DNA of 64,000 bases from Octopus bimaculoides (GCF_001194135.2 NC_068990.1:88712286-88776285), one strand, 5' to 3'. Counted from the stretch's first letter, positions 190 through 62,199 are shown. The notes: generated by a model from the letters alone, not told the origin. Made by a program: numbers and translations.

Positions 190-423
190 CTGATGATACA
201 AAAATTAAGCTTCATAAAGTTAGCATACCTGAGCAGGATGTTTTAAGACAACTTAAGAATGTGAACTTAGAGAAGTGTAATGAAGCTTGCCTTCAACATT
301 CAGAATGTAATTCATATGAGTACAATAAGAAAGAAAAGGTCTGTGATTTGAGTAATGTGACTCATTTGACTGATAAACTTAAACCCAGTGATGGAAATAG
401 GGATGTTTACATCATTGATCCAG
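190..423 (+). CDS. Exon PAN-A copy 1 (PAN/Apple-like domain)
   Basis: ttccag|CT...CCAG|gtcag, 234 nt; ADDTKIKLHKVSIPEQDVLRQLKNVNLEKCNEACLQHSECNSYEYNKKEKVCDLS...DVYIIDP; PAN pattern C-x3-C-x5-C-x-S-Y-x-Y-x6-C-x-L. Confidence 0.9.
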
Positions 424-1569
424 GTCAGCAGAATATTTCCATTTTATTTTTATATGCATGTTTGTATATCTCTCTATATATATGCATATGAGTGTGTCAC
501 ATATATATATTGGAAAGCATTAGCAATGATAAATCATATTACAGTACTTCAGACTTATGGGTGCTGTGCATAAAATATATTGTGCTTTTTGTGTGTGAGT
601 GACAGCAGAGTACTTGAGAAGAACCATTCATTGCAGCAAAAATGATGTTCTAAAAGCATTTCATTTATTCTTGTGCATGCCAGGCCCTGCCCCTAAACTA
701 ATGCTGCTTCATCAAGCATTCCCCAAATCTCATTACACTAACCCCACCTTAACACCCATCCCTCCATCACTTCTCTATTTGTAGCACTAATTGGCACCTG
801 TAATGACTTGAGAGCAGAGTTCGCATATATCATTTCCCCCATCCATTCTTTGTGCTACCAGGTTCCTCCTTCCCTTCCCCCATCCCCTACTGGTACCACT
901 TCCATCCTTCATTCTTGTTATCTTCCCTTTCCACACTATTTTCATTGGTCACTTCCTGTCTGTCACCTCACTTCTCTCTCCCTCTTCTCTGCCAAACTCC
1001 ATCATAATACTTCACATATCTGCTATCAGCCAACCATAAGTACCTCAGCATCTCTTTCTCCACTACTCCTACACTTTGCCCTTCTCCCATCTACCTTCTG
1101 ACATCTTCTTAAACCACATCTATCTTTCTCATCTTATACCCTCTTCATATGGACATTTACCACCAACTGCATATTCACCTTTGTTCATCACTTACTACAT
1201 TCACTTCTAGCCTCATCTGTTTCCATCATTTGCTCTCCCCTCACTCACTTATAAAATTACTTTCCCCCTTCTTACTCCTCACTGATCCTCTGTACATATC
1301 CTCTCTTATACTCATCTTCTTGTAAATTGTGAGGTTTAACCTGGCGACCATTCACTACTATCTTTATTTTCTTCCTAGCTACACTCATCTACCCTTACAT
1401 AATGTGAAAATGTTAGCCATGCACCTATCATATATATATGTGTGTGTGTGTGTGTGTGTGTGTGTGTGTAGAAGTAAAAAAAGTTACACACGAGTTGATA
1501 TGTATAAAGAAAATAAGACAAGGTAGAAAATGCTAAAATAATTTTATCATAAAATGGAACAGCTATTGG

Positions 1570-1960
1570 GAGGTAGCTGCAGGTATACCAGAGTGCCAGG
1601 GACTCTTTCCCATCCCAGTTACGAAAAAATGGACATTTTAATGTAGTGTGAAAGAAAGAAAGTGGTGAATCTAGTCAAGTTAACGGTTCCTCATGAAGAT
1701 AACATGGACATTGCTCAGGTTCAAAAGATTGACCACTATGTAAACCTCCTTGAGGACTGTAAGGATGCAGGCTGGAAAGTGGAACATTTTTCAATCGAAG
1801 TCAGATGTAGAGGATTTGTTGGTTACAGTGTGATGCGACTACTACTATTGTTTGGCCTAACTCATTGTCTAGAAGAATATTGAGCTTTATTTGATAACCA
1901 GTTGATCTAGCAAGCAGAGCCTTGTATCAGTGAGGCGGGATGGTGCGCAATGATGCTGTC
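1570..1960 (+). mobile_element. Degenerate C-terminal restriction-like endonuclease (RLE) fragment of an R2-superfamily (HERO/NeSL-like) non-LTR retrotransposon
   Basis: DILM*CERKKVVNLVKLTVPHEDNM...KIDHYVNLLEDCKDAGWKVEHFSIEVRCRGFVG resembles the (RP)DI...ELTVP...K..KY...EVGCRGF RLE signature; stop/frameshift present. Confidence 0.65.
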
Positions 1961-2465
1961 GGGAGGTAGGCACCAAAACAGTATGCATTCTCTCCTGATG
2001 ACCCCTTACTCTTGCTGGCTTCCGGTATGTGCAGCTTTTGACTGGTAGCACTTGCATGTGCAAGTTGTTTGCAAAACAACATTCATATGCTACAAATAAT
2101 CATGATATCTGTGACAATAAAAATCTGCAAGACCTTAAGATTTAAAGGATAATGTTTAGTAGAAGATGCTTTCCTTCATAACCTTGCTACCATGTAGGTG
2201 GCTGGTCAAAATTTAACCTCAAATTAAAAAGAGAAAGAGAAGAAAATGCATACATACATACATACCTACCTACATACATACATACATACATGTACATACA
2301 TACATTTTTATATGTGTACTTGCATCTATGTATATATTTGCGTTCAGATGTCTTCTGATTATTTCACTCGATACCTTTCATTGTAAGATTGTCATTATCT
2401 CCTTATTCTCACCCTCTTCCAAACATGCTCTCACCATTGACACCAGTTTCTCCTTTCAATTTCAG

Positions 2466-2636
2466 TTTACTCCAAAATTAACTGTGAACCACCAAAAGAC
2501 ATTGTTGGTGCTAACAAGTCCTACAATACCACCACTTATGAAGCTGAAGTGACCTACACTTGTCCAGAAGGAGATGAATTAAAATCAGTCTGTAAAAAGG
2601 ATAGTAAATGGTCTCCAGTAAATTCTACATGTAAAG
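2466..2636 (+). CDS. Exon Sushi-S1, unit 1
   Basis: ttcag|TT...AAAG|gtaat, 171 nt; YSKINCEPPKDIVGANKSYNTTTYEAEVTYTCPEGDELKSVCKKDSKWSPVNSTCK (4 Cys + Trp of CCP fold); missed by ORF track. Confidence 0.9.
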
Positions 2637-2974
2637 GTAATGTAAATAACTTCCATTTTTTTGTCACTGTCAGGGTAATCTTACTTTATTTTTGTGCAAA
2701 ATGTCTTTGCCAGAGGAAGTCTAGCTGACTCTCTGACAATTTACACAGTGTTTGTGGCTAATGGGAGAGACAAAGGAAGTTGTTCTCAGACCAGATACTT
2801 CCCCAGATGTTTGCATCAGGGTGGTCATCATTAATTCTATCCAAGGGCAAAGTATTAAATTGGGTGATAGGTTAAGTCTCCCAACAAAAAAGTGGAAATG
2901 TGGTAGTCTGTTCCCTCCAGCAGACATCCATAGTTTCCATTTACCAGACTTCATCCTTTGTTCTGAAGCAAATT

Positions 2975-3435
2975 TTTAACAGCTCCATTTCCTCTCTAGT
3001 CTTTGCACATCCTCTGTATTCATGGCCTTTGTCCCACTGCCATGTATTCTTGGTGATGATACACAAGTAACACACAATTTGCCTTTCACTCATAGTGAGA
3101 GACCTTTTAGTGCCACCAGAGGTTACAGCATTCTGAACTTTCTCCATCTTGTTATTCTAACAATTATCCATTTTTAACATCCTCTTCCTCTGCTAGTTAG
3201 GTCACCAAGGTAACAGACACTATTTACAACCTCTAGGGAACCTCCTGGGCATTTCAGAAAATCCAGTTCCTGTGTGTTTATTGTTCCTACACATCTATCA
3301 CATACAAAGACTTCTTTCTTTGTTAACCTTCCTGTGATTCCAGTGCACCTCTGATGTGTCCATATGTTGCACTGGATACACCATATGGAATTCCTACCAA
3401 CACCTTTCCTATATATTGAGCAGAGCACACACATA
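2975..3435 (-). mobile_element. RTE-clade LINE fragment (RT C-terminal region with Cys-rich insert), upstream of S2 unit 1
   Basis: RKGVGRNSIWCIQCNIWTHQRCTGITGRL...FVCDRC...LEVVNSVCYLGDL. Confidence 0.75.
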
Positions 3436-3478
3436 ATATTCATGCAACATTGGTATCAATTTCTATTCTTAATTTCAG

Positions 3479-60734: not shown

Positions 60735-61075
60735 AGGGAGATCTTAGATGGTAGGTTCATCAATTGGCCCAAGGTGTCCTCCTGCATCAGGAGGATCACA
60801 TCACTTTCACCTTTTTATTTTTGCAATAAACAAAGTGGTATCAAAAAGTTCAAAGGTTATTGTTTTAACACTGCCATTGAGATCAAGAGTGGATCACAGA
60901 AGGTCCTCGAATTGCTTACAGAAAATAACTTCCAGGCCCGATTCCAGGAATGCTGGGGCCTGTGTATTGTTATGCAAGGTGACTGTTTCAAAGGAGATAA
61001 TGTTAAAACTTGAGTAAATAAGTTATTTTTTATTAAACATAGCTAATCCAGCAACTGTTTCATACCTCCTCATAT
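60735..61075 (+). mobile_element. Mariner C-terminal fragment
   Basis: KFKGYCFNTAIEIKSG...FQARFQECWGLCIVMQGDCFKGD. Confidence 0.65.
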
Positions 61076-61189
61076 ACCATCTATACTTCTACATCATTCC
61101 ATTCTATGTAAATGCCCACATTTTAAGTCCATCATTAAATTGTCCCCACATCTCTCATTCTTGAGGCAAATAAAAGAAATCACAATCGT

Positions 61190-61280
61190 CATTGTCATCA
61201 TCATCATCATCATCATCATCATCATTATTATTATTATTATTATTATTATTATTATTATTATTATTATTACTATCATCATT
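61190..61280. repeat. (CAT)n-(TAT)n trinucleotide microsatellite
   Basis: Direct read; similar (ATT)n at 52612-52661 and 51240-51300. Confidence 0.9.
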
Positions 61281-61525
61281 GATTTGACTCAAGTTTGGTC
61301 TTATTCTTAGCATTACTGATATGGGCAGCGAGTACTACCTGTAACTTTCGGTATCCACTAGCTTTCAGTAGTCTTTCAAGTTCAGGAACATTTTAATACA
61401 ACCTCGTATAACAAATACACCACATGCATTGTAATGTTTAGTGTGTGTGTGTGTGTGTGTGTGTGCATCTGTTTCGAGTATGGATATAAAATCTACTCCT
61501 TGTTTTCTCTTTCTTTTCCTTCCAG

Positions 61526-61759
61526 CAACAGACAGGAAAATTATACTTACTAAAGTTAGCATACCTAGGCAGGATGTTTTAAGACAGCTTAAGAATGTGA
61601 ACTTAAAGAAGTGCAATGAAGCTTGCCATCAACAACCAGACTGTAATTCTTATGAGTACAATGAGAAAGAAAAGGCTTGTAATTTGAGTGATGTGACTCA
61701 TTTGACTGATAAACTTAAACCCAATGATAAAAATAGGGATACTTACATCATTGATACAG
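61526..61759 (+). CDS. Exon PAN-A copy 3
   Basis: 234 nt; TDRKIILTKVSIPRQDVLRQLKNVNLKKCNEACHQQPDCNSYEYNEKEKACNLS...DTYIIDT. Confidence 0.9.
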
Positions 61760-61962
61760 GTCAGTAGAGTATTTCATTATATTTTTATATACATGTCTGT
61801 GTATCTCTATATATATGAGTGTGTCACATATATATATTGGAAAGTGTAAGGAAACAATTTAATCAGCCCTCTTCTACCTCAAAGATTTTGGCTTTTTTCT
61901 ATATCAGAAATTTATATTATTAATGTTGTATTTCATTGGTCTAAATTTTATTTTAAATATAG

Positions 61963-62199
61963 AGGTTGACAATTTTGTGAAAGTAAATGATGCCTTTCTT
62001 GATGTACCTGAGAAAAAATTGTGGAAAAAGAAAAACGTAACAGCAGAAGATTGTAAAGAAAAATGTTTGTCTGACAGAAATTGTTTATCATTTGAAATAA
62101 CAAAAAAAAGTAAAAAATGTTACTTATCAAATCAACTTCCATATCCCTTCATGAAATTACTGCCAACCAAAGATAGAGATTACTACCAACGAATAAAAT
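61963..62199 (+). CDS. Exon PAN-F (divergent B/E-type)
   Basis: atatag|AG...AAAT|gtaat, 237 nt; VDNFVKVNDAFLDVPEKKLWKKKNVTAEDCKEKCLSDRNCLSFEITKKSKKCYLSNQLPYPFMKLLPTKDRDYYQRIK. Confidence 0.85.

Follow-up and report, generated by a model that had tools for sequence, protein, structure and literature searches.

A single-strand array of PAN and sushi exons

The stretch of DNA analysed here (the window) comprises 64,000 nucleotides from Octopus bimaculoides (GCF_001194135.2, NC_068990.1:88712286-88776285), AT-rich animal DNA with a G+C content of about 36% and twelve runs of N. From position 190 to 62199 it carries a long series of exons, each of which encodes one PAN domain or one sushi (CCP) domain. 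A scan of the window for stop-free stretches with CCP-like and PAN-like cysteine patterns found them on the plus strand only. Exons were called using tblastn with representative peptides and an open reading frame (ORF) scan, and all frame-compatible AG and GT sites were listed for each match. This resulted in 37 visible PAN or CCP exons, all on the plus strand, of which 35 are complete and two (exons 5 and 9) are cut by assembly gaps. A relaxed scan of the window that included the long introns and the minus strand found no further exons at E ≤ 1, and additional degenerate exons were rejected on this basis. The window represents internal repeat only, with no start, no signal peptide and no GON domain, and it is part of a larger exon array on the same strand that extends over more than 570 kb.

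The complete exons are 171 nt (n = 14), 168 nt (n = 1), 231 nt (n = 3), 234 nt (n = 7), 237 nt (n = 2) or 240 nt (n = 8) long. Each exon has a single strong acceptor (15–20 pyrimidines within 20 nt, then AG), which is positioned two bases upstream of the first full codon in all exons, and every exon not cut by a gap shows a GT donor one base past its last full codon. This placement of acceptors and donors puts both exon ends in phase 1. All 35 complete exons therefore belong to the symmetric class 1-1, with both introns in phase 1 and a length divisible by 3. The donor consensus is AAG/GTAA, with A at position +4 in 34 of 35 cases. When the 35 complete exons are joined (7287 nt, 2428 codons translated), the reading frame contains zero stop codons. 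Exon boundaries are confirmed by RNA at 14 splice sites (7139/7322, 23868/24857, 28075/30272, 46461/48024, 48194/48795, 49034, 61759/61963 and 62199). Such regularity of length and phase is far beyond chance. The 35 exons do not count as independent trials, since they are copies of about ten types that themselves derive from two domain kinds.

Assignment to domain families was equally uniform. Within one exon, the Pfam Sushi profile is matched over positions 1–56 of 56 and the PAN_1 profile over positions 14–72 of 76. Sushi (PF00084) scored 45 bits against a cut-off of 20.7, and PAN_1 (PF00024) reached 154 bits against a cut-off of 21.4, in six stretches of a 10-exon chimera; the profiles PAN_2, PAN_3 and PAN_4 match as well. 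Every complete exon encodes exactly four cysteines, and the pattern C..C..C..W..C is present in 15/15 complete CCP exons. In a sequence search, CCP exons matched the PDB sequences of DAF, MCP, MASP and viral CCPs, while the same kind of PDB search gave no apple-domain match at E ≤ 0.01. The PAN exons do not show the six cysteines and three disulphides of the apple subtype, as there are only four cysteines per exon. Judged by Pfam extents and the four cysteines per exon, exon boundaries coincide with domain boundaries.

An earlier note on this DNA had described 38 exons between 190 and 62199, each equal to one domain, with lengths of 168/171, 231, 234, 237 and 240 nt and with codon position 1 at both ends. 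All of this was borne out: lengths and splice sites agree in 35/35 complete exons, the span was recovered by the exon search, and the 37 visible exons are joined by one in the gap 58916-59682 (see below).

Nested repeat architecture and probable gene conversion

Ordered by exon type, with capital letters for PAN and lower-case letters for CCP exons, the array reads A a b B C c B2 A2 d, a b B C c B2 A2 d B3. This 18-exon super-unit is present twice in the window and is then followed by A B3'. The underlying 9-exon unit consists of a b B C c B2 A2 d plus either A or B3. Self-alignment revealed offsets of about 12–16 kb and of 27.7–33.7 kb, and a multi-exon unit is repeated head to tail together with its introns. 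Unit-to-unit nucleotide identity amounts to 80–95% and reaches into introns and common transposon fragments. Unit 1 is closest to unit 3, which supports the 18-exon super-unit as the higher-order repeat.

Exact runs of 60–395 nt are scattered among changing pairs of units, in exons and introns alike. To judge from these alignments, the pattern fits the mosaic expected from gene conversion.

Pooled ratios of non-synonymous to synonymous substitution rates (dN/dS) between units range from 0.47 to 0.69, with bootstrap limits of 0.31–1.2, which indicates weak purifying selection on a fast-evolving coding sequence. A dead exon array was considered and rejected: all exons are open, the overall dN/dS is below 1, and the exons are transcribed and spliced. 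Exon 1 (190-423) and exon 19 (27842-28075) differ at 12 positions, all of them non-synonymous (dS = 0), and a few other exon pairs show dN/dS near or above 1 despite the pooled values.

Octopus relatives and fragmented annotation

Protein searches returned octopus relatives only (O. bimaculoides, O. vulgaris, O. sinensis and Abdopus). The protein database contained no model encoded by the window itself, and the best identities per exon were 60–84%. The O. bimaculoides relatives are LOC128248837, LOC128248838, LOC128248840 and LOC106869402 (XP_014770611.2), the last of which ends in a GON domain. These models all lie on the plus strand of CM046610.1 at 88.25–88.83 Mb. In four partly overlapping loci (L001–L004), we detected 84 further PAN/CCP exon matches, again all on the plus strand, and 78/84 show phase-1 AG and GT sites and lengths divisible by 3. 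Matches to PAN/CCP exons were also found between the annotated gene models of this region. The NCBI models begin at an internal methionine inside PAN exons and end by intron read-through, so that the annotation appears to slice a continuous array. The region at 88.25–88.83 Mb looks like one or a few giant genes split by annotation.

The most informative relative is the O. vulgaris protein CAI9728796.1 (4283 aa), which is labelled ‘ADAMTS20-like’ and falls into the same cluster as LOC106869402. Window exons 1–37 are collinear with its residues 251–2579, with 75–94% identity per domain, and many exons find their best match in their positional counterpart. The O. vulgaris protein then runs on for approximately two more units to a GON domain. 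Its gene spans 252 kb, and another model of the same kind (4087 aa) lies about 5 kb upstream on the same strand. In O. bimaculoides, the beginning of the pre-GON exon in L001 is matched exactly by an RNA contig, which links this exon to the last B3 exon. On the basis of the collinearity with CAI9728796.1, the window most likely lies upstream of LOC106869402 in the same gene, of which LOC106869402 would be the 3' end.

Some features of CAI9728796.1 deserve mention on their own. Near residues 1000–1020, 1530–1545 and 2025–2040, three B-type PAN domains share one cut position, which falls behind the first base of a cysteine codon and corresponds to an internal T/GT site in phase 1. Elsewhere, the model reads into the intron behind a d exon. 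The three cuts look like prediction artefacts, or they could be alternative 5' splice sites. Literature searches on the salivary and venom glands of cephalopods yielded nothing usable on proteins with GON or PAN domains.

These observations have practical consequences, as a large uncharacterised octopus gene has been cut into arbitrary ‘uncharacterized LOC’ models. Studies of expression, orthology or venom and saliva proteomes that rely on these models will miscount the gene.

Splicing in genomic order and the question of exon skipping

RNA evidence was obtained from short Logan contigs (60–700 nt, with minor variants dropped) and from three thin raw-read runs, with no long reads. The raw-read runs (X24, X36 and X37) contributed only 18–31 reads on a 2.8-kb stretch, too thin for junction counts. 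For read placement, short stretches free of short interspersed nuclear elements (SINEs) and microsatellites were used, as SINE copies swamped the splice joints when the stretch 2292-13396 was taken.

Exons of the gene are present in RNA runs X25–X27. Five joints were mapped (46461>48024, 48194>48795, 23868>24857, 7139>7322 and 61759>61963), all of them GT..AG at exactly the predicted phase-1 positions. Further junctions were recovered from loose contig ends, namely b>B (4803 or 33487), B>C (37007 or 51782), A>a (28075>30272), d>B3 and B2>A2. Overall, 10/13 predicted junction types were seen: A>a, a>b, b>B, B>C, c>B2, B2>A2, A2>d, d>B3, A>B3' and B3'>next A. Every junction recovered joins genomic neighbours. 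The longest order is documented by a 702-nt contig spanning four consecutive exons (36, 37, the next A and the next exon), in the same order as in O. vulgaris CAI9728796.1. According to these RNA data, splicing follows the genomic order exon by exon, and all exons are probably included constitutively.

The earlier note had gone further and proposed that the symmetric cassettes allow combinatorial splicing into many isoforms. Its arithmetic stands: any subset of exons can be skipped in frame. This property is generic to genes built from 1-1 modules and has already been published, as symmetric modules have been linked to frame-preserving exon skipping (Patthy 2019, PMC6335736). The proposal of many isoforms, by contrast, found no support, as all RNA junctions run from neighbour to neighbour. 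For the three-exon stretches 6–8, 15–17 and 28–30, no skip junction (6>8, 15>17 or 28>30) was listed in four RNA runs, a search in short contigs with low power.

Regulated skipping, in which tissue or challenge, for example, would select isoforms of different length and valency, therefore has to be weighed against these data. In its favour, phase 1-1 throughout and an even number of cysteines (four) in every exon mean that any skip would preserve the frame without leaving a cysteine unpaired. Heavy alternative splicing of such arrays is known from titin and nebulin, and the three B exons of CAI9728796.1 that are cut at an internal phase-1 T/GT could reflect real alternative 5' splice sites. 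Nevertheless, we regard regulated skipping as unlikely. All ten junction types were seen between neighbours, the three stretches named above gave no skip junction, and long pyrimidine tracts and GT donors are present at all exons, with A at +4 in 34/35 cases. The oddities of CAI9728796.1 look like artefacts, because they stand beside obvious intron read-through in the same model. Finally, a reviewer of PMC6335736 cautions that module-combining skipping is rare in transcriptomes.

Low-level skipping without regulation is somewhat easier to accept, although we still consider it doubtful. Here, splicing noise would produce in-frame errors that escape nonsense-mediated decay and yield minor shorter proteins with no particular function. 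The idea is implied by the arithmetic of 1-1 exons; in addition, paralogous exons have nearly identical splice sites and intron starts, and a general argument for tolerated skipping noise is given in PMC6335736. Skipping noise was not observed; as the contigs used discard rare variants, this speaks neither for nor against it.

The best explanation as a whole, to which we assign a probability of roughly 0.65, is that the window is an internal piece (about 62 kb) of a giant Octopus bimaculoides gene, whose exons were copied by in-frame duplication and are spliced in order. The modules reside on single exons between phase-1 introns. Because all modules share phase 1, tandem duplication in frame is possible, and unequal crossing-over could have copied blocks of exons with their introns, first as the 9-exon unit and next as the 18-exon super-unit, leaving the frame intact. 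Gene conversion would continue to homogenise patches among the copies. The predicted product is a secreted-type, multivalent chain of small disulphide-bonded PAN and CCP/sushi modules; both secretion and a binding function are plausible for it, and the source of variation in length would presumably be the DNA, not the RNA. The uniform 1-1 phase is best read as an enabling condition and a footprint of growth by duplication, not as evidence of a splicing programme. The locus illustrates cleanly how a block of mixed domains can expand by nested tandem duplication and gene conversion when intron phase is uniform.

Several points weigh against this explanation. Continuity between the window and LOC106869402 is deduced from collinearity, and no read links the window to the pre-GON exon. 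The RNA contigs contain no junction of the types C>c, d>a or B3>A, and the RNA evidence is thin in the respects given above (contigs without minor variants, few raw reads). Many contigs could not be assigned to a single unit owing to paralogy, and for the same reason a transcript lacking an entire unit could not be told from one with normal junctions. In addition, dN/dS near 0.5–0.7, with some pairs at or above 1, denotes weak constraint.

Assembly gaps and a hidden exon

Two gaps interrupt exons. Exon 5 breaks off at the gap 6327-6336, six nt short of its end as predicted by exons 23 and 31; both match it without a difference over the last 113 nt ahead of the gap. Since a SINE follows where the intron was expected, the 10 N represent a placeholder, across which continuity is unreadable. 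At the gap 12217-12675, the last 54 nt of exon 9 are lost; the sequence beyond it corresponds to the homologous intron of unit 2 from 359 nt onwards, in agreement with the size of the gap. Intronic gaps lie at 27027-27792, 34025-34447, 38058-38129 and 40487-40934, the last of them at a TA microsatellite. The ungapped homologous introns of other units contain no exon at the positions of these four gaps.

The gap 58916-59682 is different. In one RNA contig, exon 35 is continued directly from its exact 3' end by a B3-type exon, whose sequence departs from that of exon 18 at 6/140 nt, and the sequence from 59683 onwards is homologous to intron position +64 behind exon 18. From the contig and the intron homology together it follows that this gap hides a transcribed PAN exon of type B3.

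With so many gaps, the repeated units themselves might be an artefact of a gap-rich draft assembly, generated by tandem haplotypes or mis-scaffolded paralogues. Besides the twelve N runs, it is in keeping with such an origin that several gaps abut stretches identical between units and that DNA contigs of run X1 are absent over part of the sequence beside one gap. We consider this highly improbable, as the units differ by 5–20%, far above haplotype divergence, and a later chromosome-level assembly shows the same kind of array. Moreover, the O. vulgaris model is collinear exon by exon, and RNA confirms junctions unique to single units (e.g. 28075>30272 and 61759>61963).

Run X1 lacks contigs at 27793-27904, a stretch of 112 bases that directly follows the gap 27027-27792 and covers the initial 63 nt of exon 19. 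Either variation among individuals or a local error where the gap ends may account for this.

Introns: an identical block and mobile elements

The intron directly behind each B-type PAN exon is identical in all four copies over about 150–180 nt (148 intron nt) and in three copies over 300–395 nt. The longest exact run (395 nt; 61 exon and 334 intron) is shared between exons 12 and 30. The B exons upstream of this block are 87–94% alike (6–13% differing). Two of the four copies end at assembly gaps. The identity is real, since an independent DNA contig at 5020-5228 has 4–5 times the single-copy depth.

The block contains a perfect 14-bp hairpin with a 4-nt loop at 17457-17488, which is found at the same place in the other three copies and has a folding z-score of −5.4 for the surrounding 81 nt. 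An Rfam search of the block returned no family above noise. A microRNA or other known RNA was rejected on account of the missing Rfam match and the stem of only 14 bp, and a conserved functional element was rejected because identity is 66–90% at more distant paralogue loci. Given this limited conservation, gene conversion is the simpler account of the identity.

A bolder conjecture would assign the block a role. The array could form a titin-scale unit of more than 0.5 Mb with perhaps about 300 exons (a rough figure from exon spacing), about 20,000 residues and one GON domain, in which regulated skipping of exons or of 9-exon units tunes length and valency and the palindrome-bearing intron block behind the B exons might take part. 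We hold this to be a long shot. If true, it would be an invertebrate, extracellular counterpart of titin-type length tuning.

SINE-like elements of very high copy number lie at 6350-6760, 9300-9720, 11190-11570, 18241-18621 and 62280-62330, with contig depths of at least 1000 times single-copy in DNA and RNA runs. Remnants of mariner-like transposases occupy the B2>A2 intron at 8274-8630, 22703-23958, 40935-42535 and 54261-55275. As these introns are homologous in all four units, the insertion seems older than the duplication of the units. The A2>d intron of unit 4 contains a retrotransposon-like ORF of the endonuclease/reverse-transcriptase type (56632-57779), and another ORF, gag-like and with a CCHC motif, is located behind exon 37 (63051-63566).

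Table 1. Exons of the PAN/CCP array and the intron block behind the B exons, in window coordinates. All rows of visible exons are based on the splice-site listing in an open frame; additional evidence is given per row.
Feature	Position	Strand	Length and phase	Additional evidence
Exon 1, PAN A	190..423	+	234 nt, 1-1	Pfam PAN_1
Exon 2, CCP a	2466..2636	+	171 nt, 1-1	Pfam Sushi
Exon 3, CCP b	3479..3649	+	171 nt, 1-1	RNA contig breaks 3477-3479; identical to exon 11
Exon 4, PAN B	4803..5042	+	240 nt, 1-1	b>B RNA loose end fits start 4803
Exon 5, PAN C	6102..6326	+	225 of 231 expected nt, cut by gap 6327-6336	RNA contig starts 6100-6102
Exon 6, CCP c	6969..7139	+	171 nt, 1-1	RNA joint 7139>7322
Exon 7, PAN B2	7322..7561	+	240 nt, 1-1	RNA joint 7139>7322
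Exon 8, PAN A2	8819..9052	+	234 nt, 1-1	RNA loose end before 8821 is B2 3' end
Exon 9, CCP d	12100..12216	+	117 of 171 expected nt, cut by gap 12217-12675	RNA contig breaks 12097-12100
Exon 10, CCP a	14868..15038	+	171 nt, 1-1	
Exon 11, CCP b	15934..16104	+	171 nt, 1-1	
Exon 12, PAN B	17103..17342	+	240 nt, 1-1	Present in RNA runs X25-X27
Exon 13, PAN C	19022..19252	+	231 nt, 1-1	
Exon 14, CCP c	20216..20386	+	171 nt, 1-1	
Exon 15, PAN B2	21879..22118	+	240 nt, 1-1	RNA contig 21877-21934
Exon 16, PAN A2	23635..23868	+	234 nt, 1-1	RNA joint 23868>24857
Exon 17, CCP d	24857..25027	+	171 nt, 1-1	RNA joint 23868>24857
Exon 18, PAN B3	26184..26420	+	237 nt, 1-1	d>B3 RNA contig breaks 26183/26184
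Exon 19, PAN A	27842..28075	+	234 nt, 1-1	RNA loose end past 28075 is exon 20 start
Exon 20, CCP a	30272..30439	+	168 nt, 1-1	RNA A>a junction 28075>30272
Exon 21, CCP b	31336..31506	+	171 nt, 1-1	
Exon 22, PAN B	33487..33726	+	240 nt, 1-1	b>B RNA loose end fits 33487
Exon 23, PAN C	37003..37233	+	231 nt, 1-1	B>C RNA loose end fits 37007
Exon 24, CCP c	37871..38041	+	171 nt, 1-1	
Exon 25, PAN B2	40195..40434	+	240 nt, 1-1	
Exon 26, PAN A2	42204..42437	+	234 nt, 1-1	
Exon 27, CCP d	44531..44701	+	171 nt, 1-1	
Exon 28, CCP a	46291..46461	+	171 nt, 1-1	RNA joint 46461>48024
Exon 29, CCP b	48024..48194	+	171 nt, 1-1	RNA joints 46461>48024, 48194>48795
Exon 30, PAN B	48795..49034	+	240 nt, 1-1	RNA joint 48194>48795 and B>C loose end
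Exon 31, PAN C	51778..52008	+	231 nt, 1-1	B>C RNA loose end fits 51782
Exon 32, CCP c	52878..53048	+	171 nt, 1-1	
Exon 33, PAN B2	53656..53895	+	240 nt, 1-1	
Exon 34, PAN A2	55374..55607	+	234 nt, 1-1	
Exon 35, CCP d	58062..58232	+	171 nt, 1-1	Exact 3' end joined to B3 exon in RNA
Hidden 38th exon, PAN B3-type	gap 58916..59682, expected near 59383-59619	+		RNA contig and flanking intron homology
Exon 36, PAN A	61526..61759	+	234 nt, 1-1	RNA joint 61759>61963
Exon 37, PAN B3'	61963..62199	+	237 nt, 1-1	Spliced to a further A-type exon beyond the window
Intron block after B exon 12	17343..17676	+		Copies at 49035-49368, 33727-34024, 5043-5190

Comparison with known systems

The closest counterparts are the octopus PAN/sushi/GON proteins (LOC106869402, CAI9728796.1 and GON-Abd-1), which share the module types and their order with the window. 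GON-Abd-1 of Abdopus aculeatus (R4G2C1) is a short form of 465 aa with a signal peptide, two PAN domains, one CCP domain and GON. These relatives have a GON domain, whereas the window lacks a start, a signal peptide and GON. The same holds in comparison with the GON-domain proteins (PF08685), where the domain is C-terminal in ADAMTS9/20 and GON-1: none is present in the window, while both the collinear O. vulgaris model and LOC106869402 end in GON.

In terms of gene structure, there is no difference in principle from the class 1-1 shuffling modules and the SVEP1/CSMD mosaics, in which CCP and PAN are bounded by phase-1 introns as here (PMC6335736). Dscam1 also carries tandemly duplicated exons within one gene. 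In the octopus array, however, paralogues are interleaved with other types, as the earlier note had pointed out. Only a and b are adjacent paralogues; these are spliced to each other in RNA (46461>48024) and are therefore not mutually exclusive, and no docking or selector system was identified. Each apple domain of vertebrate prekallikrein and factor XI is split over two exons, whereas the octopus PAN module is a single exon with four instead of six cysteines.

Titin and nebulin resemble the octopus gene in their giant size, in a super-repeat of higher order and in symmetric exons that each encode one domain. Both proteins make use of extensive in-frame exon skipping. They are intracellular muscle proteins with Ig/FN3 modules. 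For the octopus gene, no skipping was detected in short RNA contigs. The long homologous repeats of CR1 and the kringle IV-2 repeats of apolipoprotein(a) resemble the window in that multi-exon blocks of disulphide modules were tandemly copied with their introns, in frame, by unequal crossing-over. In both, length variation arises at the DNA level. Compared to CR1 and LPA, the octopus unit mixes PAN and CCP modules and nests 9 in 18 exons, and the array, in a region with hundreds of exons, far exceeds theirs in length.

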